64,000 nucleotides of DNA from Haliotis cracherodii. Lineage: Eukaryota. The stretch lies in NCBI RefSeq assembly GCF_022045235.1, contig NW_027266297.1:32054001-32118000 (forward strand). Direction: 5' to 3'. This document shows positions 9,203-34,977 of the stretch, piece by piece. The first letter of the stretch is position 1, and every line of letters begins with the position of its first letter. The notes beneath the pieces were generated by a model, which was not told the origin of the DNA, made no database searches, and saw only the letters and a program-made list of their open reading frames with translations. The translations under genes were made by a program, and so were the position numbers.

Positions 9203-11093
9203 CTATACTTTGTCTGATGAAATTGTGCTACCTTGTTTGAAAACATGTCGAGCAGTAGATCGTGATCTCCTCAGACGCCTCCAAGCGTAGTCATAGGACT
9301 TTAGCATGGAGGCTGTTTTGACGTGGTATAATGCTCTTCTGTACACCACCCTCCGCATATAGACACTGCAGTCCTGAGACACAACGTTGTTCACCTGAGC
9401 TCTGACAAGTTTGTTTCCAAGAAGCCGTGTTTCCCATTTAACATTATCGGGAATATAGTGGCAGAACTTACTGAATACCACACACCTTCGTCCGTACCGG
9501 ATGGACTGAACACCGATCTCATAGAGAGCTGGCTTATTGTTCTCAGACTTGAAGATTGTCTTCTTTCTGAAACCGGGGTTGGCACCCCGCCTTTTCTCCC
9601 ACTGCGCATCCTGTTTGAGTGGAACGTCAGGAGAGATAACTTTGACCCACGGTGACCAGTCCATGTTTCTTAAGCTGAAGTTGTTCTCAAAAACTTCCTC
9701 TCTTCTCAGAAGAGGTGTCACAAATTTTGTAGGTTTCTGAAATAATACATTATATATAGTGAGTCCATTTAGAAATGGACATATCTTTAAAGTTCCTCAA
9801 GGGTACAACTTTAATCGATAAATGCCATCGTTATCAGCAGTATAAGAAAGAAATGAACAACTGTATATGTCATTATCACTTGGGAAGAAACATGTCTGAA
9901 ATATACCTTCAGTGATTTAGTTCCTGGTCTTCTGGTGGATTTAGGTTTGGCCTTTCGAACTGCTGTGATTGATATAGTTTTCTTTAAGGTGGGGATCTTC
10001 ACATCTTTCTTACTGCAACCGGTTGTGGTCTTCTTTGGCGATGACAGAGAGGCTACTCCATCACGTAGTGAGGTAAACATTCCTTCCATGTCTTTGCTGA
10101 GGGCACCTTCACCACAACGAGTTCGAACTTCTTTCTCATACACCTGAAATGACATATACAAATGTCAAAACAGGAATACACGGAAAACATATTCGGTAAG
10201 GAAAGTAAACTAAATATATTATGACAAATATATATGTTTATGAACCAAATTATCGAAGAGCAAGCTTACATCAAACATATCTGCCCCGTGCTCCCTGTAG
10301 CAGATGGCCATGAGGAAGTCGAAGACATTGGAAAAGCTGTCGAGTTGAAGATGGCGTCCCCCTGTCTCCTGGGACATTCTCTTGTAGAATTCCATGCTGC
10401 CACATCCACGCTCTACCCCATATATCTTCACTCCCTGGAAACGAATGGGATGTTTCAATGTATTTACTGTACATTTGACTTATGTTAGCATGATGCAATT
10501 CTGAGTGAACTCGATTTGTATCATCCCCAACTGACAATCAAACTCAAAATGCAATTCGATATTGTATTGAGAATTTGAATCTCTTGAAAAATAGCATTTC
10601 TTAGTGATGTTAAGAATTTAATTTGGCTAAAGTAAAATTAGCTCACCATTTTATTGAGAGTTTGAATCTCCTCCCTCCAGTCTATCTTGAGTTTGTTGTC
10701 GGGGTAGTCTGGTTCATGGGGGTTGGCATCCCCGATCATGACGAGAGCACGATTGGATCCGGGAGTCCATGACAACTCCTCACCAACTTGTCTGAGAACA
10801 AGTTCGTAACATTCGTCCGAGTCTCCGCCTCCAGTGCTGCTGACGTTGTTTACAAAGTCACATAGTTCCTTAACGTCTGTGGAAAAGTCGATCCACTTTG
10901 TTACGTAGTTGTGTTTGTCACAATAGTCCCCGTGTGCGAAGACGGCAATTCTGATGGCGGGGATGTCAGCCTGGAGCCGCTGTATCATGTCCTGGAGTCG
11001 ACCTCTGACTTCGACGAGACAGCTGCTCATGGAGCCGGTTGTGTCAAAGGAGAAGACAATCTCCGGAAGTCCACCAGGAGGAAGCAAAGCCAT
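9203..11093 (-). CDS. VWA domain + Lys-rich linker + ET/HRT-like GIY-YIG-fold domain protein, copy 1 (subtype A), 460 aa
   Basis: Spliced CDS join(11093..10647,10434..10270,10143..9907,9736..9203), all GT-AG with phase-0 coding introns (149+55+79+177 aa). VWA motifs IVFSFDTTGSM, AHGDYCD, TGGGD, LVMIGD, ETGG. C-terminal motifs WSPW, PALYEIGV, ETRLL, YDYAW. Non-coding exon 1 at ~11653..11542. AATAAA at 8799..8794. Confidence 0.9.
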
Positions 11094-11650
11094 GTTGAAT
11101 CTGTTGAAATATTCAGAACAATTGAGTGTACATGTATACAAGAAGTTTTACTTTTGAAATTGATACAGCTTTATAACCATTAACTCTGGCAGTGTAAATA
11201 TAAAAATGTCTTGAAAATCCATCTTTTGGTTCATTTTAATTTTAATGTTTATATTCTCAAGTAAATTTAATAATTTCAATTTTTAATAAAGTCAATTCAG
11301 AAACAAGAATGTTGGTTTCTTTAAAATATTTGCAAAGGTTATTTCCGTAAGTATGCTATAATTTATTAGCATTTTATAGATATAGAAAAATGTGTTCAGG
11401 TTATAAATACATATGATTTAATAATTTACGCTTTTCTTATAAAATAGATATAGATGTGTAATTTATTTGGCGACGATTTCCTCGCTGTTATCAGACCCAG
11501 TACTATATACATCATCACTGTTAATATGTTCCTCAAATTACCTTTTTTGAAGGTGACAGTAGTAATATAGTTCTTTTGCTATATTTCCACGCCGCTGTCA
11601 GACGTAGTTTATATATATTCAAGTCTTTCAACTGTAGTGTATGTCACTGG

Positions 11651-11750
11651 ACTGATCTTACTCAGCAGCCCGCTCGCTTTTATACTGGCTGAGAGGCGAT
11701 CAATGGGAGCTCGCTGAGACTTGTCTTGGTTGGCATGTTTAGACCTGTTC
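11651..11750 (-). promoter_or_regulatory. Core promoter of copy 1: TATAAAA + Inr (TCAGT) + p53-family half-site cluster
   Basis: TATAAAA at 11684..11678, TCAGT at 11655..11651 (31 nt spacing), RRRCWWGYYY-like decamers at 11717, 11731 and 11741. Confidence 0.75.
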
Positions 11751-14700
11751 CGTGGTTGTGTTTAGACGAGCAGGCGATGTTCATGTTTATGCGTTTCAGT
11801 ACATGCTTCTGTTTTGAAAGAAACAAAATCAACTGATTAATCAGTTGAAGATAAATGTAATCGGGGAATTATTAAGTACCTTGGACTTTGTGAAACGTGC
11901 TGTCTTTGAATGTCTCATATTCTGAATCGACACGTGAAACATACGTCCAGAAACAGATGAACATACTCTCTCAAACACATTATTTATATCAATGCTCCTT
12001 ACACTGTCTGTCGGAAGATATTTTGGTCAGAGACGGTACATTACCGCAATGTACAGAGTTTGTATATTATAGATGACGTCACTGCTTCGCGGAATGCTTT
12101 ACTCACACAACAAAATATCGATAATTTCCTCAGCAATAACACATAGGAATCTTGTAGATGTTTCTGTGGAATATATTGTCGTTAATTGATAGTGTGTATG
12201 TACTGTACTGGAAAAAATCATCCCTTCCAGTTGATTATCCTTTGATTGTGTAAACCATCATGAGGTGTGAATATACATTGTTTTGTTCCATTTGGAGAAT
12301 ACTTTGTCGTGTCGAACTTTCCCTGAGAAGCGTTGCTTTGTTGTAATTTCGAGAAAATATGTCGGTCCTAAATGAAAAACACTATTTGATATGTATCACA
12401 ACAATGAGCACTTTCTCTATGATAGTTTTGTACTCTAAGGCGTGATGAATTACTTTGTGCACGAATTCGCAGGCCATTTTTAACACATATAAAAAACCCA
12501 TGATGTTTGTATCTTTGACAGTGTGTGTCAATGTATTTCAGGAATAGAAACAGTGTTTTCATAATCAATATAGGACGTGAGAGTACCTCTTTGTAAAATG
12601 AAGAGACACATTTAATTGTCTTTCTGTTTCACGAGACTGCAGCTGATAATACTTTTCAAAAAGTTCTTTTTCTTACATGTAAAAAATATTTACTTTTATT
12701 TCAACTCCCGAGAATACGTTTTAAAAATATATCAATAAATTGTTATTCAAGATAACAACATTGACCAGTTTTCATGACATATATTTATAATACTCTTGCG
12801 ACCAGATTTGATGTGAAGTATCAGCCGTACTACAGTGGCCAGTTTCCTTGATATATACAGCTGGAAAAGAATTTAAGCATTACATGTTTCATGTTTTCAT
12901 ATATCCTGAACTGCCGTTTATCGTTGGGAGATATTTACACATGACATTGATTTCATTTTGATGAAAGTTGAAGAAAACGCCGATGTCTGCTATGAAGTCA
13001 GTTCAAGAGAATGCCATATCGTAAAATGCAAAGAAGTTGATGAAGCAAATGAAAGGGTTGTCACATAAATATTTCCACAGAACAGTTACAAAACATGTTA
13101 CTAGATTATCGATTTCCGTTTCTGTATTTCAGTTTGGGCTTGTCGATTTGTAAAAAAATAAAGGGGTTTCGTAAGAACATTAATACCGGATGCGATTTTG
13201 AAACAAGCAGTGTTTTCCATGATATATGTCGGAAACAAAATAAACGTTGCTCAGTTTCATAACATTAATCTAAACATGAACACTTTCTAGTCTTTTAAAA
13301 GTTATAAAAACGTATGATTTATAACATGTTGATATACATCTTCCGACATGGAAAGGTGGTGATTGTACATTCAGGAAATGCGTTCATGACTTGAGGAACA
13401 TATCTCTCCAACACGTTGTTTACCTTCGTTTCTCCTCACACGTGAGTCTAGGACTCGGTTTCATTGAGTAGCGCAGTGTAGTGAAGCGAGTTTAGAAAGA
13501 ATGTGTGACGTATTTACTTCGCGGATTGTTATGCTCAGTCAGCAGTTCTCCTGTCCATGCAACAACATTACACACCGATGTAATTTTCAAACTCAATACA
13601 TTAGATGCAGAGAACAGGAATAGCAAATCAATGCAAATTTTGACTAAATAATGCATGCAAAATGTGCAGTAAATACATTGTACACAATTGAGATGAAACA
13701 TAAATACATTCTATATTCGTTTGACTATGTAAGTTAAAAGTATGTGAATTACGAACATACATAAGATGTATTTTGGTCCTTTTTATTATGTCATCGCGTT
13801 ATTTATTCACCTAATGCGTGTATTCATGTATTTACATTTGTAATATTATAAAACTGCGCATCATCTCAAGGTGGGAGTGAGTGAGTGAGTGAGTGAGTGA
13901 GTGAGTTGGGTTTAACGCCGTTTTTAACATTATTCCAGTCATATCACGGCGTTCACGGTGGGAGGACAGCCCAATGCATTTCAGATATGCCAGGTTACAA
14001 TATAGGAGTTTAAACTCATATGACGTGTGAATATGAATAAATGCACGTGAGTGCTCATAGCTGGATCATATTATATATATGAATTTCTGTTTGTTTCTGG
14101 TTACTTTACATTCCAGCACGTCAGCTTAATGTGGAAGTTCGTTGACGGTTAGTATTTGGTGAAACACACGGGCATGGTTATGGCACTGACAGATTCTAAT
14201 TTACGACCAGACGATCCTGACACGGACCTTAAATAAAAACGAATAAAACACAACCTCTTTCAATATTCGTAAGAAAACTGCTGAATAGTACTTGATCATT
14301 GATTTCACGGATCAATATCCTGTAGTCGAACATCACTGCACCTTTGAGCTAGAAATGCAGTAACTTATTGACAGGCGCTCAAAAGTCCCAAAAATGTTGT
14401 CAGCGAAATATCATGCTGGAAATCGTAACAACAAGAACGGCTGTTCGTTTTGTTCCTTAAAATGTCTTTACTCAAAGAGATATGGAAGTCGGTTCTGGAT
14501 ATGGGGGGTTGTGATATGACTGAATGTTGCTATATGTCCATGTCAGGGCGCATTCAATGAAACTGAATCGAGAAAAGGGAAAGTTGAGGTCTTCAGTGTG
14601 AAACATACGCCACGTTTCGGGGGTAGGAGGACGCACTCTTGTAAGTAGACATTTTCAAAGAAAATAAAGTATATGCAAGTCTTATTTGTTTGTTTTATTC

Positions 14701-15102
14701 ATTCCTATTCTGATATTGCACATGTTAAAATGAAGTATAGATTGACGGTCAATGATTGATAGGAATTTATATACATCGTAATATAAACAATCAAATATAT
14801 ACAACGTTTCACATAACAGGAAAATAACGTTCATCTGTCCATCATTCGGTAGAACACACACATTCTCAGTCACGCACTTTAATAACACATCATGCCCTCT
14901 CATTCACATAAAATATCTGGCAAGTTGTATGATATGAGATTCGTTCTCGAAGTTTTTCATAGTTATATACTTATGAATTTGGCCTCTTATGTGCCAGTGT
15001 TTTCCAGAATGACCTTTGATATATGGCATGTTAAACAAACCGTCCATATCTCCGTATCTGTTAGCATATATCACAGAATGTGCGTCAGTGTTCAGAAACA
15101 TT

Positions 15103-16993
15103 CTATACTTTGTCTGATGAAATTGTGCTACCTTGTTTGAACACATGTCGAGCAGTAGATCGTGATCTCCTCAGACGCCTCCAAGCGTAGTCATAGGACT
15201 TTAGCATGGAGGCTGTTTTGACGTGGTATAATGCTCTTCTGTACACCACCCTCCGCATATAGACACTGCAGTCCTGAGACACAACGTTGTTCACCTGAGC
15301 TCTGACAAGTTTGTTTCCAAGAAGCCGTGTTTCCCAATTAACATTATCGGGAATATAGTGGCAGAACTTGCTGAATACCACACACCTTCGTCCGTACCGG
15401 ATGGACTGAACACCGATCTCATAGAGAGCTGGCTTATTGTTCTCAGACTTGAAGATTATCTTCTTTCTGAAACCGGGGTTGGCACCCCGCCTTTTCTCCC
15501 ACTGCGCATCCTGTTTGAGTGGAACGTCAGGAGAGATAACTTTGACCCACGGTGACCAGTCCATGTTTCTTAAGCTGAAGTTGTTCTCAAAGACTTCCTC
15601 TCTTCTCAGAAGAGGTGTCACAAATTTTGTAGGTTTCTGAAATAATACATTATATATAGTGAGTCCATTTAGAAATGGACATATCTTTAAAGTTCCTCAA
15701 GGGTACAACTTTAATCGATAAATGCCATCGTTATCAGCAGTATAAGAAAGAAATGAACAACTGTATATGTCATTATCACTTGGGAAGAAACATGTCTGAA
15801 ATATACCTTCAGTGATTTAGTTCCTGGTCTTCTGGTGGATTTAGGTTTGGCCTTTCGAACTGCTGTGATTGATATAGTTTTCTTTAAGGTGGGGATCTTC
15901 ACATCTTTCTTACTGCAACCGGTTGTGGTCTTCTTTGGCGATGACAGAGAGGCTACTCCATCACGTAGTGAGGTAAACATTCCTTCCATGTCTTTGCTGA
16001 GGGCACCTTCACCACAACGAGTTCGAACTTCTTTCTCATACACCTGAAATGACATATACAAATGTCAAAACAGGAATACACGGAAAACATATTCGGTAAG
16101 GAAAGTAAACTAAATATATTATGACAAATATATATGTTTATGAACCAAATTATCGAAGAGCAAGCTTACATCAAACATATCTGCCCCGTGCTCCCTGTAG
16201 CAGATGGCCATGAGGAAGTCGAAGACATTGGAAAAGCTGTCGAGTTGAAGATGGCGTCCCCCTGTCTCCTGGGACATTCTCTTGTAGAATTCCATGCTGC
16301 CACATCCACGCTCTACCCCATATATCTTCACTCCCTGGAAACGAATGGGATGTTTCAATGTATTTACTGTACATTTGACTTATGTTAGCATGATGCAATT
16401 CTGAGTGAACTCGATTTGTATCATCCCCAACTGACAATCAAACTCAAAATGCAATTCGATATTGTATTGAGAATTTGAATCTCTTGAAAAATAGCATTTC
16501 TTAGTGATGTTAAGAATTTAATTTGGCTAAAGTAAAATTAGCTCACCATTTTATTGAGAGTTTGAATCTCCTCCCTCCAGTCTATCTTGAGTTTGTTGTC
16601 GGGGTAGTCTGGTTCATGGGGGTTGGCATCCCCGATCATGACGAGGGCACGATTGGATCCGGGAGTCCATGACAACTCCTCACCAACTTGTCTGAGCACA
16701 AGTTCGTAACATTCGTCCGAGTCTCCGCCTCCAGTGCTGCTGACGTTGTTTACAAAGTCACATAGTTCCTTAACGTCTGTGGAGAAGTCGATCCACTTTG
16801 TTACGTAGTTGTGTTTGTCACAATAGTCCCCGTGTGCGAAGACGGCAATTCTGATGGCGGGGATGTCAGCCTGGAGCCGCTGTATCATGTCCTGGAGTCG
16901 ACCTCTGACTTCGACGAGACAGCTGCTCATGGAGCCGGTTGTGTCAAAGGAGAAGACAATCTCCGGAAGTCCACCAGGAGGAAGCAAAGCCAT
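15103..16993 (-). CDS. VWA + ET-like domain protein, copy 2 (subtype A), 460 aa
   Basis: Exact +5900 offset from copy 1: join(16993..16547,16334..16170,16043..15807,15636..15103). Splice sites and frame are intact, and the protein is near-identical to copy 1. Confidence 0.9.
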
Positions 16994-17550
16994 GTTGAAT
17001 CTGTGGAAATATTCAGAACAATTGAGTGTACATGTATACAAGAAGTTTTACTTTTGAAATTGATACAGTTTTATAACCATTAACTCTGGCAGTGTAAATA
17101 TAAAAATGTCTTGAAAATCCATCTTTTGGTTCATTTTAATTTTAATGTTTATATTCTCAAGTAAATTTAATAATTTCAATTTTTAATAAAGTCAATTCAG
17201 AAACAAGGATGTTGGTTTCTTTAAAATATTTGCAAAGGTTATTTCCGTAAGTATGCTATAATTTATTAGCATTTTATAGATATAGAAAAATGTGTTCAGG
17301 TTATAAATACATATGATTTAATAATTTACGCTTTTCTTATAAAATAGATATAGATGTGTAATTTATTTGGCGACGATTTCCTCGCTGTTATCAGACCCAG
17401 TACTATATACATCATCACTGTTAATATGTTCCTCAAATTACCTTTTTTGAAGGTGACAGTAGTAATATAGTTCTTTTGCTATATTTCCACGCCGCTGTCA
17501 GACGTAGTTTATATATATTCAAGTCTTTCAACTGTAGTGTATGTCACTGG

Positions 17551-17650
17551 ACTGATCTTACTCAGCAGCCCGCTCGCTTTTATACTGGCTGAGAGGCGAT
17601 CAATGGGAGCTCGCTGAGACTTGTCTTGGTTGGCATGTTTAGACCTGTTC
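17551..17650 (-). promoter_or_regulatory. Core promoter of copy 2
   Basis: Identical to copy 1: TATA 17584..17578, Inr 17555..17551. Confidence 0.75.
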
Positions 17651-20600
17651 CGTGGTTGTGTTTAGACGAGCAGGCGATGTTCATGTCTATGCGTTTCAAT
17701 ACATGCTTCTGTTTGGAAAGAAACAAAATCAACTGATTAATCAGTTGAAGATAAATATAATCGGGGAATTATTAAGTACCTTTGACTTTGTGAAACGTGC
17801 TGTCTTTGAATGTCTCATATTCTGAATCGACACGTGAAACATACGTCCAGAAACAGATGAACATACTCTCTCAAACACATTATTTATATCAATGCTCCTT
17901 ACACTGTCTGTCGGAAGATATTTTGGTCGGAGACGGTACATTGCCGCAATGTACAGAGTTTGTATATTATAGATGACGTCACTGCTTCGCGGAATGCTTT
18001 ACTCACACAACAAAATATCGATAATTTCCTCAGCAATAACACATAGGAATCTTGTAGATGTTTCTGTGGAATATATTGTCGTTAATTGATAGTGTGTATG
18101 TACTGTACTGGAAAAAATCATCCCTTCCAGTTGATTATCCTTTGATTGTGTAAACCATCATGAGGTGTGAATATACATTGTTTTGTTCCATTTGGAGAAT
18201 ACTTTGTCGTGTCGAACTTTCCCTGAGAAGCGTTGCTTTGTTGTAATTTCGAGAAAATATGTCGGTCCTAAATGAAAAACACTATTTGATATGTATCACA
18301 ACAATGAGCACTTTCTCTATGATAGTTTTGTACTCTAAGGCGTGATGAATTACTTTGTGCACGAATTCGCAGGCCATTTTTAACACATATAAAAAACCCA
18401 TGATGTTTGTATCTTTGACAGTGTGTGTCAATGTATTTCAGGAATAGAAACAGTTGTTTTCATAATCAATATAGGACGTGAGAGTACCTCTTTGTAAAAT
18501 GAAGAGACACATTTAATTGTCTTTCTATTTCACGAGACTGCAGCTGATAATACTTTTCAAAAAGCTCTTTTTCCTTACATGTAAAATATATTTACTTTTA
18601 TTTCAACTCCCGAGAATACGTTTTAAAAATATATCAATAAATTGTTATTCAAGATAACAACATTGACCAGTTTTCATGACACATATTTATAATACTCTTG
18701 CGACCAGATTTGATGTGAAGTATCTGCCGTACTACCGTGGCCAGTTTCCTTGATATATACAGCTGGAAAAGAATTTAAGCATTACATGTTTCATGTTTTC
18801 ATATATCCTGAACTACCGTTTATCGTTGGGAGATATTTACACATGACATTGATTTCATTTTGATGAAAGTTGAAGAAAACGCCGATGTCTGCTATGAAGT
18901 CAGTTCAAGAGAATGCCATATCGTAAAATGCAAAGAAGTTGATGAAGCAAATGAAAGGGTTGTCACATAAATATTTCCACAGAACAGTTACAAAACATGT
19001 TACTAGATTATCGATTTCCGTTTCTGTATTTCAGTTTGGGCTTGTCGATTTGTAAAAAAATAAAGGGGTTTCGTAAGAACATTAATACCGGATGCGATTT
19101 TGAAACAAGCAGTGTTTTCCATGATATATGTCGGAAACAAAATAAACGTTGCTCAGTTTCATAACATTAATCTAAACATGAACACTTTCTAGTCTTTTAA
19201 AAGTTATAAAAACGTATGATTTATAACATGTTGATATACATCTTCCGACATGGAAAGGTGGTGATTGTACATTCAGGAAATGCGTTCATGACTTGAGGAA
19301 CATATCTCTCCAACACGTTGTTTACCTTCGTTTCTCCTCACACGTGAGTCTAGGACTCGGTTTCATTGAGTAGCGCAGTGTAGTGAAGCGAGTTTAGAAA
19401 GAATGTGTGACGTATTTACTTCGCGGATTGTTATGCCCAGTCAGCAGTTCTCCTGTCCATGCAACAACATTACACACCGATGTAATTTTCAAACTCAATA
19501 CATTAGATGCAGAGAACAGGAACAGCAAATCACTGCAAATTTTGACTAAATAATGCATGCAAAATGTGCAGTAAATACATTGTACACAATTGAGATGAAA
19601 CATAAATACATTCTATATTCGTTTGACTATGTAAGTTAAAAGTATGTGTATTACGAACATACATAAGATGTATTTTGATCCTATTCATTATGTCATCGCG
19701 TTATTTTTTCACCTAATGCGTGTATTCATGTATTTACATATGTAAGATTATAAAACTGCGCATCATCTCAAGGTGGGAGTGAGTGAAAGAGTTGGGTTTA
19801 ACGCCGCTTCAAACATTATTCCAGTCATATCATGGCGTTCAAGGTGGGAGGACAGCCCAATGCATTTCAGATATGCCAGGTTACAATATAGGAGTTTAAA
19901 CTCATATGACGTGTGAATATGAATAAATTCACGTGAGTGCTCATAGCTGGATCATATTATATATATGAATTTCTGTTTGTTTCTGGTTACTTTACATTCC
20001 AGCACGTCAGCTTAATGTGGAAGTTCGTTGACGGTTAGTATTTGGTGAAACACACGAGCATGGTTACGGCACTGACAGATTCTAATTTACGACCAGACGA
20101 TCCTGACACGGACCTTAAATAAAAACGAAAAAACACAACCTCTTTCAATATTCGTAAGAAAACTGCTGAATAGTTCTTGATCATTGATTTCACGGATTAA
20201 TATCCTGTAGTCGAACATCACTGCACCTTTGAGCTAGAAATGCAGTAACTTATTGACAGAGGCTCCCAAGTCCCAAAAATGTTGTCAGCGAAATATCATG
20301 CTGGAAATCGTAACAACAAGAACGGCTGTTCGTTTTGTTCCTTAAAATGTCTTTACTCAAAGAGATATGGAAGTCGGTTCTGGATATGGGGGGTTGTGCT
20401 ATGACTGAATGTTGCTGTATGTCTATGTCAGGGCGCATGAAATGTAACTGAATCGAGACAAGGGAAAGTTGAGGTCTTCAGTGTGAAACAAACGCCACGT
20501 TTCGGGGGCAGGAGGACGCACTCTTGTAAGTAGACATTTTCAAAGAAAATAAAGTATATGCAAGTCTTATTTGTTTGTTTTATTCATTCCTATTCTGATA

Positions 20601-20987
20601 TTGCACATGTTAAAATGAAGTATATATTGTAGGTCAATGAATGATAGGAATTTATATACATCGTAATATGAACAATCAAATATATACAACGTTTCACATA
20701 ACAGGAAAATAACGTTCATCTGTCCATCGTTCGGTAGAACACACACATTCTCAGTCACGCACTTTAATGACACATCATGCCGTCTCATTCACATAAAATA
20801 TCTGGCAAGATGTATGATATGAGATTCGATCTCGATGTTTTCCAAAGTTATATACTTATGAATTTGGCCTCTTATGTGCCAGTGTTTTCCAGAATGTCCT
20901 TTGATATATGGCATGTTAAGAAAACCGTCCATATCTCCGTATCTGTTAGCATATATAACAGAATGTGCGTCAATGTTCAGAAACATT

Positions 20988-22883
20988 CTATACTTTGTCT
21001 GATGAAATTGTGCTACCTTGTTTGAACACATGTCGAGCAGTAGATCGTGATCTCCTCAGGCGCCCCCATGCGTAGTCATAGGACTTTATCATGGAGGCTG
21101 TTTTGGCATGGTATGATGCTCTTCTGTACACCACCCTCCGCATATAGACACTGCAGTCCTGAGACACAACGTTGTTCACCTGAGCTCTGACAAGTTTGTT
21201 TCCAAGAAGCCGTGTTTCCCAATTAACATTATCGGGAATATGGTGGCAGAACTTGCTGAATACCACACACCTTCGTCCGTACCGGATGGACTGAACACCA
21301 GTCTCATAGAGAGCTGGCTTATTGTTCTCAGACTTGAAGATTGTCTTCTTTCTGAATCCGGGGTTGGCACCCCGTCTTTTCTCCCATTGTGCATCCTGTT
21401 TGAGAGGAACGTCAGGAGAGATAACTTTGACCCACGGTGACCAGTCCATGTTTTTCAAGCTGAAGTTGTTCTCAAAGACTTCCTCTCTTCTCAGGAGTGG
21501 TGTCACAAACTTTGTTGATTTCTGGAATAATATAGTGTATTGTGAGACTCCTTGACATGGTCATAGCCTAACACAATGAAAACAAGAATTAAACACTCGC
21601 ATTATGATCGCGCATTATAAAAAAAATGAGAGAATATTTTACCTTGAACGATTTCTTTCTTGGCTTTCTGATGGATTTAGGTTTTGGCTTTCGGACTCTT
21701 TGGATGGATGTTATTTTCTTTAAGGTGGGAACCTTCACATCTTTCTTAGCGGCACTGATCGTAATCGCTGTCTTTGGTTGAGGAGGGGAGACAATTCCAT
21801 CACGTAGGGATGTAAACATTCCTTCCATGTCTTTGCTGAGGGCACCATCAGCGCAACGGGCTCGAACCTCTTTCTCGTACACCTGATGAGGGCAAATGAT
21901 CATTGATGAAAGGAATTTTATAACAACGAATATCACACAATTCAAATGACAGCCGCACTACGGATTTTAAAGTGATGCAGTTATTTCAACTTACATGAAG
22001 AATCTCTGCCCCCTGTTCCCTGTAGCAGATGGCCATAAGGAAGTCAAAGATGTTTGTAAAGTTTTCCAATTTAAGATGCCGACCTCCTGTCTTGTTGGAA
22101 ATGGTTTCGTAGAACGTCGTATTGTCCGTGTCGCACTGAACTCCATAGATTTTTACTCCCTGAAATTAAAATTAATTAATAGAAAAAGTGAATGAACATC
22201 CTTGTGTCGAAGTTACGGTTGTTGTGGCGAAGCAAAAGCAAGGTCCCTGCGCATTCCTTCTTTATTCATCATTTTCGGTTGTGTCGAACCTCGGATAACT
22301 TTACTCGGATACATTTACGTGAGTCTCTTCAACGTCGACTTAAAGGTGGTTGACTGGTGACTGTCGTGTTTTTATTATTTGATTTATGTCTGAAAATGAC
22401 CACAACTTGGAAATTAATAGAAATCCAACATACCATTTCATTCAGAGTTTGTGTCTCCTTTCTCCAGTCTATTTTTAGTTTATTGGCTTTGAAGTTTGGT
22501 TCGTGGGGCTTGTCGTCCCCGACGACGACGAGAACACGGTTAGATCCTGGTGTCCATGACAACTCCTCCCTAACTTGTCGGAGAACAAGTTCGTAACACT
22601 CGCCGTGGTCGTAATCGCCTCCTGTATCTTTAACGTTCATGACGAAGTCGCAGAGCCCTTTCACGTCAGTGGAGAAGTCGATCCACTTTGTGATATATGT
22701 GGATTTGGTACAGTAGTCACCGTGTGCGAAGACGGCGATTCTGACGGCGGGGATGTCAGCCTGGAGCCGCTGTATCATGTCCTGGAGTCGTCCTCTGACT
22801 TCGGCCAGACACTTGCTCATGGAGCCGGTTGTGTCAAAGGAGAAGACAATCTCCGGAAGTCCACCAGGAGGAAGCAAAGCCAT
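20988..22883 (-). CDS. VWA + ET-like domain protein, copy 3 (A/B mosaic), 462 aa
   Basis: join(22883..22434,22159..21995,21882..21643,21521..20988), GT-AG, 150+55+80+177 aa. Exon 3 (GVKIYGVQCDTDNTTFYETISNKTGGRHL...) was translated by hand because it is missing from the ORF track. Confidence 0.9.
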
Positions 22884-23434
22884 GTTGAATCTGTTGAAAT
22901 ATTCAAAACAACTGAAGTACATGTATACAAGAAGTTTCACTCTAAAAATTGATAGAAATTTAGAACCATTATCTCTAGCAGTGTAAATAATTATAAAAAT
23001 GTTTTGAAAATCCGATTTTTTTTCCAATTTAATCTTAATTTTTATATTCTCAAATAAAAGAATAGATTAAATTTTTAACAAAGTCCATTCAGAAACAAGA
23101 ATGTTGGTTTCTTAAAAATATTTGTACAGGTAATTTCCGTTAGTATGCTATGATCATTTTTTATAGAAATAGAAGAATGGGTTTCCATTATTAGAAAATA
23201 TTTGTTCTCATCAAATAGATATAAATCGGTAAGTTATTTGGCGACGATTTCCTCGCTGTTATCAGAGGCAGTACTATATGTATATATACACCATCACCGT
23301 TATACTACATGTTCCTCTAGTTACCTGTTTTGAATGGTGAGATTAGTTATATAGTTCTTGAGCTATATTTCCACGCTGCTGTCAGACGTAGTTTATATAT
23401 ATTCAAGTCTTTCAACTGTAGTGTATGTCACTGG

Positions 23435-23534
23435 ACTGATCTTACTCAGCAGCCCGCCAGCTTTTATACTGGCTGAGAGGCGACCAATTGGAGCTCGCTG
23501 AGACTTGTCTTGGTTGTCATGTTTTGACCTGTTC
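23435..23534 (-). promoter_or_regulatory. Core promoter of copy 3
   Basis: TATA 23468..23462, Inr 23439..23435, exon-1 donor CAG|GTAACT at 23325. Confidence 0.7.
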
Positions 23535-26500: not shown

Positions 26501-26752
26501 TAGAAAACACACATTCTCAGTCACGCACTTTAATGACACATCATGCCGTCTCATTCACATAACTATCTGGCAAGTTGTATAATATGAGATTCGATCTCGA
26601 TCTTTTCCAAAGTTATAAACTGATTAATTTGGCCTCTTATGTGCCAGTGTTTTCCAGAATGTCCTTTGATATATGGCATGTTAAGAAAACCGTCCATATC
26701 TCCGTATCTGTTAGCATATATTACAGAATGTGTGTCAATGTTCAGAAACATT

Positions 26753-28642
26753 CTATACTTTGTCTGATGAAATTGTGCTACCTTGTTTGAACACATGTCG
26801 AGCAGTAGATCGTGATCTCCTCAAACGCCTCCAAGCGTAGTCATACGACTTTATCATGGAAGCTGTTTTGACGTGGTTTGATGCTCTTCTATACACCACC
26901 CTCCGCACATAGACACTGCAGTCCTGAGACACAACGTTGTTTACCTGAGCTCTGACAATTTTGTTTCCAAGAAGCCGCGTTTCCCAATTAACATTATCGG
27001 GAATATGGTGGCAGAACTTGCTGAATACCACACACCTTCGTCCGTACCGGATGGACTGAACACCAGTCTCATAGAGAGCTGGCTTATTGTTCTCAGACTT
27101 GAAGATTGTCTTCTTTCTGAATCCAGGGTTGGCACCCCGTCTTTTCTCCCATTGTGCATCCTGTTTGAGTGGAACGTCAGGGGAGATAACTTTGACCCAC
27201 GGTGACCAGTCCATGTTTCTCAAGCTGAAGTTGTTCTCAAAGACTTCCTCTCTTCTCAGGAGTGGTGTCACAAACTTTGTTGATTTCTGGAATAATATAG
27301 TGTATTGTGAGACTCCTTGACATGGTCATAGCCTAACACAATGAAAACAAGAATTAAACACTGTGATCGCGCATTTAAAAAAAATTGAGAGAATATTTTA
27401 CCTTGAACGATTTCTTTCTTGGCTTTCTGATGGATTTAGGTTTTGGCTTTCTGACTCTTTGAATGGATGTTATTTTCTTTAAGGTGGGAACCTTCACATC
27501 TTTCTTAGCGGCACTGATCGTAATCGCTGTCTTTGGTTGAGGAGGGGAGACAATTCCATCACGTAGGGATGTAAACATTCCTTCCATGTCTTTGCTGAGG
27601 GCACCATCAGCGCAACGGGCTCGAACCTCTTTCTCGTACACCTGATGAGGGCAAATGATCATTGATGAAAGGAATTTTATAACAACGAATATCACACAAT
27701 TCAAATGACAGCCGCTCTACGGATTTTAAAGTGGTGCAGTTATTTCAACTTACATGAAGAATCTCTGCCCCCTGTTCCCTGTAGCAGATGGCCATAAGGA
27801 AGTCAAAGATGTTTGTAAAGTTTTCCAATTTAAGATGCCGACCTCCTGTCTTGTTGGAAATGGTTTCGTAGAACGTCGTATTGTCCGTGTCGCACTGAAC
27901 TCCATAGATTTTTACTCCCTGAAATTAAAATTAATTAATAGAATAAGTGAATGAACATCCTTGTGTCGAAGTTACGGTTATTGTGGCGAAGTAAAAGCAA
28001 GGTCCTTGCGCATTCCTTCTTCATTCATCATTTTCGGTTGTGTCGAACCTCGGATAACTTTACTCGGATACATTTAAGTGAGTCCCTTCAACGTCGATTC
28101 AAAGGTGTTTGACTGGTGACTGTCGTGTTCTTATTATTTGATTTATGTCTGAAAATGACCACAACCTGGAAATTAATAGAAATTCAACATACCATTTCAT
28201 TCAGAGTTTGTGTCTCCTTTCTCCAGTCTATTTTTAGTTTATTGGCTTTGAAGTTTGGTTCGTGGGGCTTGTCGTCCCCGACGACGACGAGAACACGGTT
28301 AGATCCTGGTGTCCATGACAACTCCTCCCTAACTTGTCGGAGAACAAGTTCGTAACACTCGCCGTGGTCGTAATCGCCTCCTGTATCTTCAACGTTCATG
28401 ACGAAGTCGCAGAGCCCTTTGACGTCAGTGGAGAAGTCGATCCATTTTGTGACGTATGTGGATTTGGTACAGTAGTCACCGTGTGCGAAGACGGCGATTC
28501 TGACGGCGGGGATGTCAGCCTGGAGCCGCTGTATCATGTCCTGGAGTCGACCCCTGACTTCGGCGAGACAGTCGCACATGGAGCCAGTAGTGTCAAAGGA
28601 GAAAACAATCTCCGGAAGTCCACCAGGAGGAAGCAAAGCCAT
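26753..28642 (-). CDS. VWA + ET-like domain protein, copy 4 (subtype B), 462 aa
   Basis: join(28642..28193,27918..27754,27641..27402,27286..26753), GT-AG, open frame. Confidence 0.9.
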
Positions 28643-29117
28643 GTTGAATCTGTGGAAAATGAAAACACAACTACATGAATACATACATACATGAAAGTAT
28701 ATTTGTAATATCGATTCAGTTTCATTACTAACCCTTGCAGCGGAAATGCTGAAGTAATTTAATTAATTGTCTTGTTCATTTTAATGTTATTTTAATGTTA
28801 CATTGAAAGTTTTCCTGTCAAGGTTTATTGAGAAATCACAATCTTGTTGTCTTTTCTAATTCAAGGTAATTTGCATTAGCATACTATAACTATTTGTATT
28901 ATATGCAGAAAACATGTGTTTACGTTACGTTACGTAAATTTATCAAATAATTGATCTTTTTCTTTAAAAATAGTTATTGTGGAATGTGTTCCACAAGTTA
29001 CCTTTTTTGAATGATGACAGTAGATATTTAGTTGTTGTTTTTTATTCTCCGGTGCTATTAAATGCCGTTTCAGATATACCAACGCCTTCCAACTGCTAGC
29101 GAGTGACTTGTGTGTAG

Positions 29118-29218
29118 ACTGATCTTACTCAGCGAGCCGATCAGCTTTTATAGTGGCTGAGGGGCGATCAATGGTATCTCGCCGAGACTTGTCGTGGTTG
29201 GCATGTTTAGACTTGCTC
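29118..29218 (-). promoter_or_regulatory. Core promoter of copy 4
   Basis: TATA 29152..29146, Inr 29122..29118, exon-1 donor AAG|GTAACT at 29002. Motifs are conserved despite divergent surrounding sequence. Confidence 0.75.
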
Positions 29219-31211
29219 CGTGGTTGTGTTTTGGACATCAGACGATGTTCATGCCTCTGTGTTTCTTGTTCGTATTTCAAGCTAAACTGTTGTTTGAAAA
29301 CGCGAACTAACTCAAATTATTAATGAGTTAAAGATAAAAGTGTTATCGGAGTTATTGACCATCTTTGATTGATGGCAAATTGGTCTAATTGATTAGGCGA
29401 TATTCCGAACTAATACATGACACATGCGTTCAGAAACAGTTGAACTGTCTCGCTCAAATACAGTGTTTATGCCAAGCTCCCTACAGTGACTGCAGTTGCT
29501 ATTTCGCCGTGCACAATGCGTGGAGTTTGTAAAATGAGTGGATGACGTCAATGCTTCGCGGAATAAACATTTTATGCTCAGTGATAACGGATAGGAATAT
29601 TTTTTTCTGTGAGATATATATTGTTGTTGATTAATGTTTAGTATGCACGGAAAGGAATACATAATGCCTTCCTATTTGGTCATCTTTAGACGGTATAAAG
29701 CATTAACTTGCTAATTGGAAGGAATGCATGTTTGATCCAACAAACTATGTATGTTTACAAGCGTTGCTGTGTATACACATGCGATGCGTTGAAAAGTTCG
29801 TGTGTTACATTTTCGATAATATATGGCGGCTCATCAAAAATATATCCTGTTTTGACGACTTTCTTCCACATAAATTAGCAATACCACAAAAGAGATATAG
29901 TAATGCTGTAAGGCTTTTATTATTACTTTGTGTACTTATTCCACGACCAAACATTTTTCTTCTGCGTAACTTATTTTAGCAATAAATAAACCTTAAAGAC
30001 GGTGACTATAGGAAGAACTAACAATCACCTTTTGTTTGCTTTTTTTCATTATTTCATCATGGGGACAATATCTTCCTGAAAACACTTAAAGTATGATTTA
30101 ATATTTTAATATTATTTCAACCACTGACCCTACGTTTTCAAAAACAATCCCTACACCTAGTGACTCAAAATAAGGGCGAAACGTGGTCTAGTTTTCATGA
30201 AATAAATGTTATTAGCAGTACTATAGCTACATGCTTCCATGTGAAATATCAGTTATTATTATTAAGTAAGTGTTGAAAAACTGTTTATTCCCATATACAA
30301 ATTGATATATCAGTCGAGTGACATATAACGCTTTATTCTGGAAGTACTTCCTCAAAGACAATCATTACAGATTAAAATCATGAAATAAAATACATGACAA
30401 TTAAAACAGTTTTTTTCGTGTTAAATAAACGTGTTTATCTCATCTGATGACTTGGGAAAATCACCAAGGTGAGATAAGCATGTTATTTGACCCAAACAGA
30501 CAAATATCTTCTATTAATACATTGGTCAGTTTCCATGATAAACTTCAGAAAAAAATACATTGTCCATCTTCAGTGAGATATTTGTGTAAAATAACGTTGA
30601 TCGGCTTCTCGCTGATACATTATTAATACAACTTGTACTTTATCCAGCGATTAAATACCCTTTTTGAGTTAGGTCATACTAGTCTCACCTTATGACGCTG
30701 TTCAAATTACCTTCCCGTATCTAACATATTCATGGCAACATCGTTCTGTCATAACTGTCAATCAAGATGGCGCATACACATTAATAATAGATCGGAGAAT
30801 TTTATTAACATTGTCGAATAACCAAATATTATTCCCTGGGAAGAAATATGGCAAGATGATGGTTAACCATGGTTAATCTGACATGGTGCCGGCTTTCCCT
30901 AAAAATATTCAAACCACTGTGTCCGTGCCACAGCAAATACGAAGTTGTGTCCTTGGAATTATGGCTGTTTCTGGACACAGAAATGAAAACTTCTTGAAGA
31001 GTTTCAAAAACATATGAATACCTGTTGTTCAGTGTAGGGCGTTTTGCAACATACAGCATTCACACAAAACGGACACTGTTGCTCTTCCTCCGCAATATCG
31101 TCCCATTCACGCCCAATGCCGTGGATTCACGTCGGTTACGGTATCATATAGTGCAACCAACTCAGTAAGGAATGTATTTCGTGGCTTGCAGTTTCCTCTG
31201 TACACTGACAT

Positions 31212-31685
31212 CAATCTCATTAAAATCAGATCTTAGTTCTCGCTACCGCTAAACAAAGATCTGAGGACATCCCATTACGGGTCACGTCAGACCGACCTTG
31301 CACGAACTTTGAGCGACCAATGGAATGACCAACCAGAAGGCAGCTTTCTCCAGCTTTACGGCACTAATTTCAAATTGGCGACTATGCTTCGAAACATATT
31401 TTGACAAATTCTCCATCACAAATTCGAAACCTGAACAAAAGAATATTCTGGAATGGGTAATAGATGGTGTAGATTGTATGGATTCGGTCGTTAAACCCGT
31501 AACTATCGTTCGGAATACCCCGTGTTAAAATTTTCGAGGTTGCATGATTCCGACGGTCACTTTCATGATCTGGTAAGTGACGCTCTGATTGGTCGGATGA
31601 AAGGTCGTTCTGACTTGACCCTAATGGGATATCTTCAGATCTTTGTTTAGCGGTAGTGAACTAAGGTCTGATTTTAATGAGATTG
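31212..31685. mobile_element. MITE with ~90-bp imperfect TIRs and 9-bp TSD (Mutator-like)
   Basis: CAATCTCATTAAAATCAGA... and ...TCTGATTTTAATGAGATTG, with TSD CACTGACAT. Confidence 0.85.
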
Positions 31686-33093
31686 CACTGACATTAGTGG
31701 TGGAAACAAAGGTGCAACTTTTACGACAGAAAACACGTCAGGGTAACTCACGATATAATTACCAGCGACACAGAACGTCAGCTTATGTTTAAATGTCAGC
31801 TCGCTTCACATTGCACTGGGGGACTGTTTCGAGTCACGTGACTATTTATGTCAAAACGTTATTTTTTCACCTAATGCCTGTATTCGGGTATTTACATTTG
31901 TAAGGTTATATAACTGCGCATCATCTCAAGGTGGGAGGACAGCCCAGTGCATTTCAGTTCGTGGATGTTAACATGAGTGTTTCATTATATGCAAGTTTCA
32001 ATATAGGAGTTTAAACTCATATGACGTGTGAATATGAATAAATTCACGTGAGTGCTCATTACTAGATCATATTATATATATGACTTTCTGTTTGTTTCTG
32101 GTTACTTTACATTCCAGCACGTCAGTTTAATGTGGAAGATCGTTGACGTTTAGTATTTGTCGAAACACACGAGCATGGTTACGGCACTGACAGATTCTAA
32201 TTCACGACCAGACAATCCTGACACGGACTTTAAATAAAAGCGAAAGAGAAATCCATTTCAATATTCATAAGAAAACTGCTGAATAGTACTTGATCAATAA
32301 TTTCATGGATCTATATCCTGTAGCCGAACATCACTGCACCTTTGAGCTAGAAATGGAGTAACTTATTGACAGGCGCTCCCAAGTCCCAATAATGTTGTCA
32401 GTGAAATATCATGCTGGAAATCGTAACAAGAATGGCTGTTCGTTTTGTTCCTTACGATGTCTTTACTCAAAGAGATATGGAAGTCGGGTCTGGATATGGG
32501 GGTGTGTGATATGCGTGAATGTTGCTGTATGTCCATGTCAGGGCGCATGAAATGTAACTGAATCGAGACAAGGGAACGTTGAAGTCTTCAGCGTGAAACA
32601 AACGCCACGTTTCGGGGGTAGGAGGACGCAGTCTTGTAAGTACACATTATCAAAGAAAATAGGATATATGTAAGTCTTATTAGTTTGTTTTATTCATTCT
32701 TATTCAGTTTGATTTTGCACATGTTAAAATGAGGTATGATCTGAAGGCCAATGAATTAGTTTTATATACATTTTAATATAAACAATATATACAGCGTTTC
32801 ACATAACAGGAAAATAACGTTCATCAGTCTCTGTCATTCGGTAGAAAACACACATTCTCAGTCACGCACTTTAATGACACATCATGCCCTCTCATTCACA
32901 TAACTATCTGGCAAGTTGTATAATATGAGATTCGATCTCGATCTTTTCCAAAGTTATAAACTGATTAATTTGGCCTCTTATGTGCCAGTGTTTTCCAGAA
33001 TGTCCTTTGATATATGGCATGTTAAGAAAACCGTCCATATCTCCGTATCTGTTAGCATATATTACAGAATGTGTGTCAATGTTCAGAAACATT

Positions 33094-34977
33094 CTATACT
33101 TTGTCTGATGAAATTGTGCTACCTTGTTTGAACACATGTCGAGCAGTAGATCGTGATCTCCTCAAACGTCTCCAAGCGTAGTCATACGACTTTATCATGG
33201 AAGCTGTTTTGACGTGGTTTGATGCTCTTCTATACACCACCCTCCGCACATAGACACTGCAGTCCTGAGACACAACGTTGTTTACCTGAGCTCTGACAAT
33301 TTTGTTTCCAAGAAGCCGCGTTTCCCAATTAACATTATCGGGAATATGGTGGCAGAACTTGCTGAATACCACACACCTTCGTCCGTACCGGATGGACTGA
33401 ACACCAGTCTCATAGAGAGCTGGCTTATTGTTCTCAGACTTGAAGATTGTCTTCTTTCTGAATCCAGGGTTGGCACCCCGTCTTTTCTCCCATTGTGCAT
33501 CCTGTTTGAGTGGAACGTCAGGGGAGATAACTTTGACCCACGGTGACCAGTCCATGTTTCTCAAGCTGAAGTTGTTCTCAAAGACTTCCTCTCTTCTCAG
33601 GAGTGGTGTCACAAACTTTGTTGATTTCTGGAATAATATAGTGTATTGTGAGACTCCTTGACATGGTCATAGCCTAACACAATGAAAACAAGAATTAAAC
33701 ACTCTGATCGGGCATTAAAAAACAATTGAGAGAATATTTTACCTTGAACGATTTCTTTCTTGGCTTTCTGATGGATTTAGGTTTTGGCTTTCGGACTCTT
33801 TGGATGGATGTTATTTTCTTTAAGGTGGGAACCTTCACATCTTTCTTAGCGGCACTGATCTTTGGTTGAGGAGGGGAGACAATTCCATCACGTAGGGATG
33901 TAAACATTCCTTCCATGTCTTTGCTGAGGGCACCATCAGCGCAACGGGCTCGAACCTCTTTCTCGTACACCTGATGAGGGCAAATGATCATTGATGAAAG
34001 GAATTTTATAACAACGAATATCACACAATTCAAATGACAGCCGCTCTACGGATTTTAAAGTGGTGCAGTTATTTCAACTTACATGAAGAATCTCTGCCCC
34101 CTGTTCCCTGTAGCAGATGGCCATAAGGAAGTCAAAGATGTTTGTAAAGTTTTCCAATTTAAGATGCCGACCTCCTGTCCTGTTGGAAATGGTTTCGTAG
34201 AACGTCGTATTGTCCGTGTCGCACTGAACTCCATAGATTTTTACTCCCTGAAATTAAAATTAATTAATAGAATAAGTGAATGAACATCCTTGTGTCGAAG
34301 TTACGGTTGTTGTGGCGAAGTAAAAGCAAGATCCTTGCGCATTCCTTCTTCATTCATCATTTTCGGTTGTGTCGAACCCCGGATAACTTTACTCGGATAC
34401 ATTTAAGTGAGTCAATTCAACGTCGATTCAAAGCTTAAGGTGTTTGACTGGTGACTGTCGTGTTCTTATTATTTGATTTATGTCTGAAAATGACCACAAC
34501 CTGGTAATTAATAGAAATCCAACATACCATTTCATTCAGAGTTTGTGTCTCCTTTCTCCAGTCTATTTTTAGTTTATTGGCTTTGAAGTTTGGTTCGTGG
34601 GGCTTGTCGTCCCCGACGACGACGAGAACACGGTTAGATCCTGGTGTCCATGACAACTCCTCCCTAACTTGTCGGAGAACAAGTTCGTAACACTCGCCGT
34701 GGTCGTAATCGCCTCCTGTATCTTCAACGTTCATGACGAAGTCGCAGAGCCCTTTGACGTCAGTGGAGAAGTCGATCCATTTTGTGACGTATGTGGATTT
34801 GGTACAGTAGTCACCGTGTGCGAAGACGGCGATTCTGACGGCGGGGATGTCAGCCTGGAGCCGCTGTATCATGTCCTGGAGTCGACCCCTGACTTCGGCG
34901 AGACAGTCGCACATGGAGCCAGTAGTGTCAAAGGAGAAAACAATCTCCGGAAGTCCACCAGGAGGAAGCAAAGCCAT
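33094..34977 (-). CDS. VWA + ET-like domain protein, copy 5 (subtype B), 458 aa
   Basis: join(34977..34528,34247..34083,33970..33743,33627..33094). In-frame 12-nt deletion (TAIT) in the linker exon relative to copy 4. Confidence 0.9.

Follow-up and report, generated by a model that had tools for sequence, protein, structure and literature searches.

Five tandem genes for a two-module protein

We analysed a window of 64,000 nucleotides from the black abalone, Haliotis cracherodii (G000:C34:32054001-32118000, with 0 N within it). Between positions 9203 and 34977, the list of open reading frames (ORFs) and direct reading of the sequence revealed five intact copies of one gene, all on the minus strand and repeated with a period of ~5.8-6.3 kb. 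The encoded protein has an N-terminal VWA domain, a pair of helices, a basic disordered linker, and a C-terminal domain with the fold of the GIY-YIG nucleases. We placed the exons by blastn of those of copy 1 against the window, followed by a search for splice sites and open frames (Table 1). In all five copies the gene has four coding exons, of 149 or 150, 55, 76-80 and 177 amino acids (aa); all introns are GT-AG and in phase 0, there are zero internal stops in the 20 exons, and the products of copies 1 to 5 are 460, 460, 462, 462 and 458 aa long. We call copies 1-2 type A and copies 3-5 type B. The array consists of functional genes for a cytoplasmic or nuclear two-module protein.

The connection between the VWA exons and the last exon is supported by an independent gene model. 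A full-length search with a paralogue (P0003) as query recovered an H. cracherodii protein that NCBI labels 'uncharacterized protein' (P0151). Its sequence follows the four exon peptides of copy 1 one after the other, with 100% identity and no gap. Hence, a separate prediction joins the same exons. The exons were searched individually, and P0151 was used as the full-length stand-in for copy 1. In other molluscs, the homologues P0189, P0010 and P0009 (460-483 aa) lie on Logan contigs of only ~1.6-1.9 kb, which leaves no space for introns and suggests, from contig size, that transcripts in these animals carry the fusion of VWA and GIY-YIG-fold domain.

A preliminary description of this DNA, made from its letters, had proposed five intact spliced genes in tandem, each with five exons and a 177-aa last exon carrying an ordered set of motifs. 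The genes and the last exon (9736..9203 in copy 1) stand, with 20/20 exons open and bounded by canonical splice sites, but the coding exons number four. All the motifs were found, with small differences between copies: LRREE, WSPW, VVFSK, ETRLL and ARHV occur in 5/5 last exons, PALYEIGV in copies 1-2 is PALYETGV in copies 3-5, SVYMRR in copies 1-3 is SVYVRR in copies 4-5, and MLKSYDYAW in copies 1-2 is MIKSYDYAW in copies 3-5. A fifth exon, if there is any, would be 5' non-coding, which is plausible given the AG acceptor 7 nucleotides (nt) upstream of each ATG and a conserved TATAAAA block ~590 nt upstream. Types A and B share 96% identity over this upstream block (11605-11746 in copy 1; copies 2-5 have its equivalents) and 66-87% over its flanks. 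The block contains a TATA box (TATAAAA, 11678-11684 on the minus strand in copy 1) that every copy has kept, and at least one decamer matching the pattern of a p53-type half-site (AGACAAGTCT). The block is probably the promoter together with the start of a 5' non-coding exon.

Table 1. Coding exons of the five gene copies, in window coordinates. nt, nucleotide.
Copy (type)	Feature	Position	Strand	Evidence
1 (A)	Coding exon 1: ATG and N-terminal part of VWA, 149 aa	10647..11093	-	Splice sites and frame; Pfam; 149/149 identical to P0151 1-149
1 (A)	Coding exon 2: C-terminal part of VWA, 55 aa	10270..10434	-	AG/GT borders, phase 0; 55/55 identical to P0151 150-204
1 (A)	Coding exon 3: helical YEKEVR segment, then disordered basic linker, 79 aa	9907..10143	-	79/79 identical to P0151 205-283
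1 (A)	Coding exon 4: GIY-YIG-fold domain, 177 aa + stop	9203..9736	-	177/177 identical to P0151 284-460
2 (A)	Coding exon 1 (VWA)	16547..16993	-	99.3% nt identity to copy 1; 149/149 aa identical to P0151
2 (A)	Coding exon 2	16170..16334	-	100% nt identity to copy 1
2 (A)	Coding exon 3 (helices and basic linker)	15807..16043	-	100% nt identity to copy 1
2 (A)	Coding exon 4 (GIY-YIG-fold domain + stop)	15103..15636	-	99.1% nt identity to copy 1; 175/177 aa identical to P0151
3 (B)	Coding exon 1 (VWA, 150 aa)	22434..22883	-	ATG, GT donor, no stops; 82.9% nt identity to copy 1; Pfam VWA 7.8e-06
3 (B)	Coding exon 2 (55 aa)	21995..22159	-	AG/GT borders, open frame
3 (B)	Coding exon 3 (80 aa)	21643..21882	-	Splice sites, open frame
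3 (B)	Coding exon 4 (GIY-YIG-fold domain + stop)	20988..21521	-	95.1% nt identity to copy 1; PF19239 E 0.023
4 (B)	Coding exon 1 (VWA)	28193..28642	-	blastn against copy 1, open frame
4 (B)	Coding exon 2	27754..27918	-	Splice sites, open frame
4 (B)	Coding exon 3	27402..27641	-	Splice sites, open frame
4 (B)	Coding exon 4 (GIY-YIG-fold domain + stop)	26753..27286	-	94.4% nt identity to copy 1
5 (B)	Coding exon 1 (VWA)	34528..34977	-	blastn against copy 1, open frame
5 (B)	Coding exon 2	34083..34247	-	Splice sites, open frame
5 (B)	Coding exon 3, 76 aa, with a 4-codon deletion in the linker	33743..33970	-	Splice sites, open frame
5 (B)	Coding exon 4 (GIY-YIG-fold domain + stop)	33094..33627	-	94.2% nt identity to copy 1

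An intracellular VWA domain with a complete metal site and a basic tether

The N-terminal module is a VWA domain, as had been proposed, by three lines of evidence: Pfam, fold search and the residues of the metal ion-dependent adhesion site (MIDAS). Exon 1 of copy 1 alone matches VWA_4 (E 7.4e-07, 29.3 bits for a cut-off of 27) and VWA (E 9.5e-05). Foldseek matched the VWA part to integrin beta-I, TFIIH p44 and collagen VI VWA domains with E from 1e-9 to 2e-8. The MIDAS is complete (D17-x-T19-x-S21, T87, D122), Thr taking the position of the first Ser. When 92 full-length homologues are aligned, D17, T19, S21 and D122 are invariant and T87 is conserved in at least 90%. No signal peptide was found, in line with the preliminary description, and no membrane segment: the first VWA strand (beta-1) begins at residue 10, and hydropathy averaged over 19 aa peaks at 0.89.

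The AlphaFold2 (AF2) model of P0151 places the VWA fold at residues 1-198, followed by two conserved helices (200-232), in which Y206, E207 and E209 are invariant and R211 and R213 near-invariant among the same 92 homologues, and by a disordered linker (~236-292). The predicted local distance difference test (pLDDT) averages 82.6 and falls below 50 at 236-266, 273-275 and 277-279; the predicted template modelling score (pTM) of 0.54 is expected for two domains joined by a flexible tether. The linker is as basic as had been claimed, with 17 K/R for 1 D/E over 57 residues (net +16). The VWA half is acidic (net -14) and the C-terminal domain (residues 292-460, encoded by one exon) is basic, with 37 K/R and 14 D/E.

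The last exon encodes a divergent GIY-YIG-fold domain

The last exon was modelled with high confidence (pLDDT 95.8, pTM 0.90; alignment A1 of 51 shorter relatives). After a small N-terminal beta extension, the elements follow in the order E70-77, E85-92, H101-105, H109-120, E124-131 and H136-145, which is the beta1-beta2-alpha1-alpha2-beta3-alpha3 order of the GIY-YIG superfamily around a three-stranded sheet. We compared the model with 48,161 PDB chains using VIA-align, a scan independent of Foldseek, and GIY-YIG nucleases took 7/8 of the top places. The best match was T4 EndoII (2wsh; Z 7.2, 113 residues aligned, 3.2 A), and the others were Hpy188I (4.7), PD-T4-3 (4.3), UvrC-N (4.1), I-TevI (3.7), GRXS16-N (3.6) and Eco29kI (3.3). 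One unrelated chain (8z5n) reached Z 3.5 at rank 7 and all the remaining ones scored at most 2.7. A Z of 7 is middling alone; what makes the model-based comparison persuasive is that a single fold family tops the list and that the whole domain is covered. The GIY-YIG fold claimed for this exon is thus upheld. The check by AlphaFold and Foldseek that had been foreseen for it gave a confident model and no significant Foldseek match in the PDB (none at E ≤0.001 with the C-terminal model), the GIY-YIG result coming from VIA-align. The top Foldseek rows were TNF/TRAF structures with template modelling (TM) scores of 0.12-0.24, and EndoII and Hpy188I appeared only at ranks 6-7. A TNF/TRAF-like reading was considered and dropped because of these low TM scores and of the VIA-align result.

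Sequence searches connect the domain to a Pfam family through intermediates. Scanned against 1.84 billion representatives, the exon peptide returned 149 relatives at E ≤0.001. The window exons give 15.9 and 14.9 bits (E 0.011 and 0.023) against PF19239 (GIY_YIG_domain), where the cut-off is 21.4; we take this to be the Pfam family that holds the GIY-YIG domain of the plant EFFECTOR OF TRANSCRIPTION (ET)/HRT proteins. Several relatives pass the cut-off: the paralogue P0003 (26.2 bits), P0131 (33.6), P0095 (30.0) and P0016 (28.8). Matches at E ≤0.01 were found in 21/52 homologues. Residues 104-153 of the window exon match profile positions 105-155, and P0131 spans positions 4-156 of 163. Since the window exons are sub-threshold but their relatives pass, we regard the window genes as divergent kin of PF19239. 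The language-model neighbours of P0131 in the ESM Atlas fall in PF01541 and PF19239 clusters; the window exon itself was uninformative there (top score 0.75). The fold is shared by viral proteins in BFVD, M1I060 (E 8e-5, probability 1.00) and M1HHK8, whose accession block presumably belongs to chlorovirus proteomes. Searches of PDB sequences and profiles with the exon and with alignments A1 and A5 returned nothing meaningful, the last-exon domain did not match PF01541, and a six-frame search of the H. cracherodii genome with PF19239 gave no match at a genome-wide E of 0.01.

The canonical catalytic residues are partly lost

The hallmarks of the GIY-YIG superfamily are the Tyr of the GIY motif, the Tyr of the YIG motif, a central Arg, a C-terminal Glu and often an Asn (PMC1564403). 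We set these against the abalone domain using aligned ranges, the order of secondary-structure elements and sequence alignment. The VIA-align ranges for I-TevI (model 68..156 to chain 2..93) and UvrC (model 55..154 to chain 1..89) put Y72 on the GIY Tyr (Y6 of I-TevI) and position 153 on the Asn. The first Tyr, on beta-1, is thus Y72 (L-Y-E), present in 5/5 copies and a Tyr in 85% of 266 family sequences. The second, on beta-2, is replaced by F88 (V-V-F-S-K) in 5/5 copies; the family has Y in 51%, F in 30% and L in 8%. On alpha-1, R104 (W-E-T-R-L-L) is present in 5/5 copies and fits the register of I-TevI F-E-K-R-W (R27), but is Arg in only 29% of the family, and the P0131 subgroup has Arg at positions 100 and 106 instead. 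The metal-binding Glu is missing: alpha-3 (136-145) lacks acidic residues in all five copies. At the family position of this Glu (12 residues before that of the Asn), E occurs in 7/112 members without a detected VWA, and acidic residues do not rank among the six commonest in the 142 VWA-fused members. The Asn is also missing: copy 3 has G at position 153, the other four copies have R, and N is found there in 15% of the family.

Other residues are near-invariant in the family, namely E73 (98%), R128 (97%), W27, W30, Y150 and W152, with D149 mostly conserved; they point to a candidate family-specific functional or structural site, and E73 and R128 may either pair in a salt bridge beneath the sheet or be part of a novel active site. 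A small subgroup (P0131, P0267, P0268 and P0095) retains V-Y-V-G, Arg residues, G-S-H-L, Glu and D-Y-A-W-N, and looks like a complete enzyme. In comparison with it, the VWA-fused clade appears to be a degenerate branch. With Glu and Asn absent and the second Tyr replaced by Phe, 'nuclease' here names a fold and not a shown activity. As these losses affect the five copies and essentially the whole VWA-fused clade, a pseudo-nuclease that binds nucleic acid or a ligand is, from the alignments, more likely than a canonical endonuclease.

The residues also bear on a different proposal, that of an active enzyme acting in immunity or stress, in which the VWA domain would sense, for example, a viral or damage-associated protein and license cutting of self or foreign nucleic acid by a non-canonical set of residues (Y72, E73, R128 and D149). 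We consider this a tentative candidate, the leading alternative to the function proposed below. The sensor role and the defence or stress role put forward in the preliminary description are likewise putative. The domain does have the fold of nucleases, E73, R128 and Y72 are as conserved as described, R104 matches I-TevI R27 by helix register in the window copies, and a nickase function is reported for plant ET2 (PMC6585611). Yet almost none of 254 family members has the metal-ligand Glu, Arg replaces Asn and Phe replaces the second Tyr in the abalone proteins, and R104 is far from general in the family.

A conserved multi-copy family of lophotrochozoans

The search for homologues gave 953 matches to the VWA plus GIY-YIG-fold architecture at E ≤0.001. 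Among the best 120 of these, from which all named hosts come, are gastropods, bivalves, a chiton (Liolophura), the brachiopod Lingula and the nemertean Lineus, i.e., Mollusca, Brachiopoda and Nemertea, all lophotrochozoan phyla. Homologues are labelled as uncharacterised, as 'VWFA domain-containing' or, by transfer, as 'R811-like', and a few have automatic PF19239 labels. Many paralogues are found in other molluscs too. VWA recurs as the partner in the 58 longer homologues (in 15 by Pfam). Single homologues have a TRAF2 zinc finger, an ENT domain or a syntaxin N-terminal domain, which may be fusions of gene models, and the 'stand-alone' domain proteins of 150-200 aa may be the last exon called alone on short contigs.

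In the H. cracherodii genome the domain exon occurs at least 15 times: ten copies lie on the contig of the window (C34, 32.05-32.22 Mb), one on C11 and four on C56. A VWA exon lies 1.2-2.6 kb upstream of nearly every copy; one copy on C56 has no VWA match at a threshold of 1e-10. The array goes on outside the window, with one gene ~1 kb before the window start and another four or five at 82-111 kb beyond the window end (G000:C34 32049989-32052760 and 32200270-32229150), and the VWA exons of some of these copies contain stops. The family had been described as uncharacterised and locally expanded, which agrees with the copy number and with the literature, where searches for PF19239 and for GIY-YIG with vWA, mollusc or oyster found no description of the combined architecture. 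A mussel 'GIY-YIG DC' transcript (PMC6215123) was considered and set aside, no tie to the VWA-fused family having been established. The superfamily, the Pfam family and VWA domains are already known; the architecture that combines VWA with a PF19239-type domain appears to be newly described. The proteins that have it make up a conserved family, multi-copy and so far unstudied, in molluscs, brachiopods and nemerteans.

These data allow us to assess whether the array is an artefact or in decay, made of pseudogenes, mis-joined models or a last exon that is in fact the inserted or domesticated nuclease of a Penelope-type transposon. The stops just mentioned fit this idea, as do the aberrant 300-aa model of H. 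rubra (P0001) and the abundance of Penelope-like GIY-YIG copies in the genome (at least 36 PF01541 matches). We nevertheless judge it very improbable: every window exon is open with canonical splice sites, the ratio of nonsynonymous to synonymous substitution rates (dN/dS) is well under 1 (see below), the architecture is found in hundreds of proteins of three phyla, a VWA exon adjoins nearly every genomic copy of the domain exon, and hhalign gives a probability of 1% against the Penelope GIY-YIG domain. The transposon origin of the last exon, in particular, was rejected because hhalign (alignments A1 and A5) finds no similarity to the Penelope-type GIY-YIG sequences of this genome. The Penelope-like endonuclease copies themselves (L002-L012, on contigs of the same assembly, G000) are near-identical to each other and have the full Y/Y/R/E/N set.

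Copy number also counts in two other proposals. It favours the sensing enzyme considered above, since the tandem expansion, with ten copies within ~170 kb and many paralogues in other molluscs, and the TRAF2-type zinc finger of one homologue would suit immunity or stress. It fits less well with a housekeeping factor of DNA repair or chromatin, a lophotrochozoan analogue of VWA proteins such as Ku70/80 and TFIIH p44, whose GIY-YIG-derived module would read DNA structures and whose copies would be dosage or tissue paralogues instead of conflict genes, because high and variable copy numbers and tandem arrays are unusual for core repair factors. The conservation of the family over three phyla, the basic C-terminal half and the presence of the TFIIH p44 VWA among the top structural matches speak for this factor. 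Against it, the best 120 matches cover only three lophotrochozoan phyla, and integrin-type VWA domains match equally well as p44. Despite the purifying selection and the two old, conserved paralogue types described below, which it would explain, we find it quite unlikely.

The 3' ends of the genes are homogenised

The two types of genes differ unevenly along their length. Nucleotide differences between A and B amount to 17-22% in exons 1-3 and only 5-6% in exon 4, and synonymous divergence (dS) is 0.5-1.2 in the former vs 0.16-0.20 in the latter. A sliding comparison gave 95-99% identity from exon 4 through ~1.3 kb of 3' non-coding flank, 77-84% in parts past this flank, and 33-87% in exons 1-3 and their introns. 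The conversion tract (9203-9736 vs 20988-21521) begins inside intron 3 and reaches ~7900. Because the non-coding flank is homogenised too, the uniformity of the last exon reflects gene conversion or exchange at the 3' end, and not special constraint alone. Between type A and a homologue from H. asinina (P0153), identity is 98% in exon 1 but falls to 86% in exon 4. Together with the contrast in dS, this indicates that the two VWA types are old and conserved and that the 3' end was homogenised within the species. The array is thus a clean case of exon-limited gene conversion, where a 3' exon and its flank are homogenised and two old VWA types persist.

The dN/dS ratio is 0.11-0.34 across all exons, which indicates that the genes are under constraint (purifying selection). 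We saw no arms-race signal of diversifying selection in the gene-wide dN/dS, no test aimed at it having been run. The ratio of 0.2 on the VWA exon and the 98% identity of this exon between two Haliotis species, without any diversifying sign, count against a sensor of viral or damage proteins.

A 44-nt fragment (6596-6639) matches the 3' end of exon 4 at 95% identity, and the ~600 nt that follow it (6033-6639) are ~71% like the 3' flank of the gene. The region 6033-6639 would be a relic of a further copy or a duplication boundary.

Other features of the window

The window contains a fragment of a Pao/BEL-type long terminal repeat retrotransposon (61417-61971, plus strand; Peptidase_A17, E 1.4e-31) beside frameshifted pol-like ORFs (60197-63197), and four satellite-like tandem arrays, at 43953-45223 (C-rich unit of 47 nt x 26), 50982-51895 (39 nt x 23), 56480-57117 (16/32/103 nt) and 3117-3815 (17 nt x 40). 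The array at 56.5 kb yields a spurious proline-rich ORF.

Proposed function

VWA domains generally bind an acidic residue of a partner through the MIDAS. The reading we favour, which we hold at about even confidence, makes the protein a MIDAS-dependent adaptor that uses its basic tether and its GIY-YIG-derived module to bind nucleic acid, with no canonical catalysis. The MIDAS of the VWA domain would bind an acidic residue of a protein partner. The GIY-YIG-derived module would anchor the protein on nucleic acid or chromatin together with the tether, in which a nuclear localisation signal may also reside, and the partner would in this way be brought to DNA or RNA.

Several points weigh against such an adaptor or against its derivation. 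Nuclear localisation and nucleic-acid binding are suggested by composition only. The equivalences of catalytic residues come from aligned ranges, element order and sequence alignment, and E73 and R128, along with D149, which most members keep, might build an active site at another place. Nicking of DNA is reported for plant ET2 (PMC6585611), so that enzymes may exist among the relatives. As for the fold and kinship of the domain, the window exon itself is under the PF19239 cut-off, the Foldseek comparison with the PDB had no significant match, and hhalign was negative against canonical GIY-YIG sequences of the Penelope type.

The loss of Glu and Asn beside near-invariant new residues poses the question of whether the family is a pseudo-nuclease adaptor or has re-invented an active site. 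A broader scenario, rather unlikely in our view, takes the latter side: the ET-type GIY-YIG domain would be an old eukaryotic module, carried by viral proteins too (the fold matches in BFVD), and wired in lophotrochozoans to a MIDAS VWA domain to make a multi-copy family of intracellular sensor-effectors for genome defence or innate immunity. The VWA domain would then detect a protein trigger, and the GIY-YIG-derived module would attack nucleic acid with a non-canonical active site around E73 and R128.

Comparison with known systems

In Ku70/80, TFIIH p44 and Ro60, a cytosolic or nuclear VWA domain docks a protein beside a nucleic-acid-binding module. The abalone proteins share with them the VWA next to a second module, and the p44 VWA is among their best fold matches. 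They differ in the second module and in the complete and invariant MIDAS, and there is no orthology with these systems.

ANKLE1 and SLX1 also combine a GIY-YIG module with domains that recruit or regulate it (LEM and ankyrin in the first, RING with SLX4 in the second). In contrast to the abalone proteins, they keep the two Tyr, the Arg and the Glu, are proven nucleases, have other partner domains and do not form tandem arrays. The Slx1 family also lacks the C-terminal Asn (PMC1564403), so this residue is not universal. The Unc-1 domain of ANKLE2 is an animal GIY-YIG-like fold without the classic motifs, set in a multi-domain scaffold and devoid of endonuclease activity, and is thus a precedent for reading the abalone domain as a pseudo-nuclease (PMC13179284). 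ANKLE2 has, however, no detectable sequence kinship with the abalone proteins and carries ankyrin and LEM domains instead of VWA, whereas the abalone domain still has the first Tyr and a recognisable beta-1/beta-2 motif pair.

The closest structural parallel is T4 endonuclease II (2wsh), which shares the fold over 113 residues, including the N-terminal extension (Z 7.2). Sequence identity of the abalone domain to the GIY-YIG nucleases (EndoII, Hpy188I, UvrC-N, I-TevI, Eco29kI and AtGRXS16-N) is nevertheless 3-11%, its pentad is incomplete, and it has invariant residues of its own (E73, R128, W27, W30 and W152).

The preliminary description had likened the last exon to the plant ET/HRT domain. 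With PF19239 taken as the Pfam family of ET, the likeness would hold for the ~165-residue domain, which is co-linear with that profile, and for the motif order given for ET in the preliminary description (RE, W..W, YE, VVY, ..LL,.RR/.RW, DYAW), which is the consensus of the abalone-type family. It does not extend to membership of ET/HRT. The plant proteins have C-terminal cysteine-rich ET repeats that bind zinc and DNA (PMC6585611). In the abalone proteins, the GIY-YIG-fold domain is itself C-terminal, is fused to VWA and is followed by nothing; Pfam found only VWA and PF19239, and no ET repeats. In the absence of these repeats, the abalone proteins are not members of the ET/HRT family. They also differ from ET2, a reported nickase (PMC6585611), in lacking the Glu and the Asn. 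In the ET literature, the ET genes are described as plant-specific. If the link to plant ET is true, the plant-specific status of this type of domain and its proposed direct bacterial origin need revisiting.

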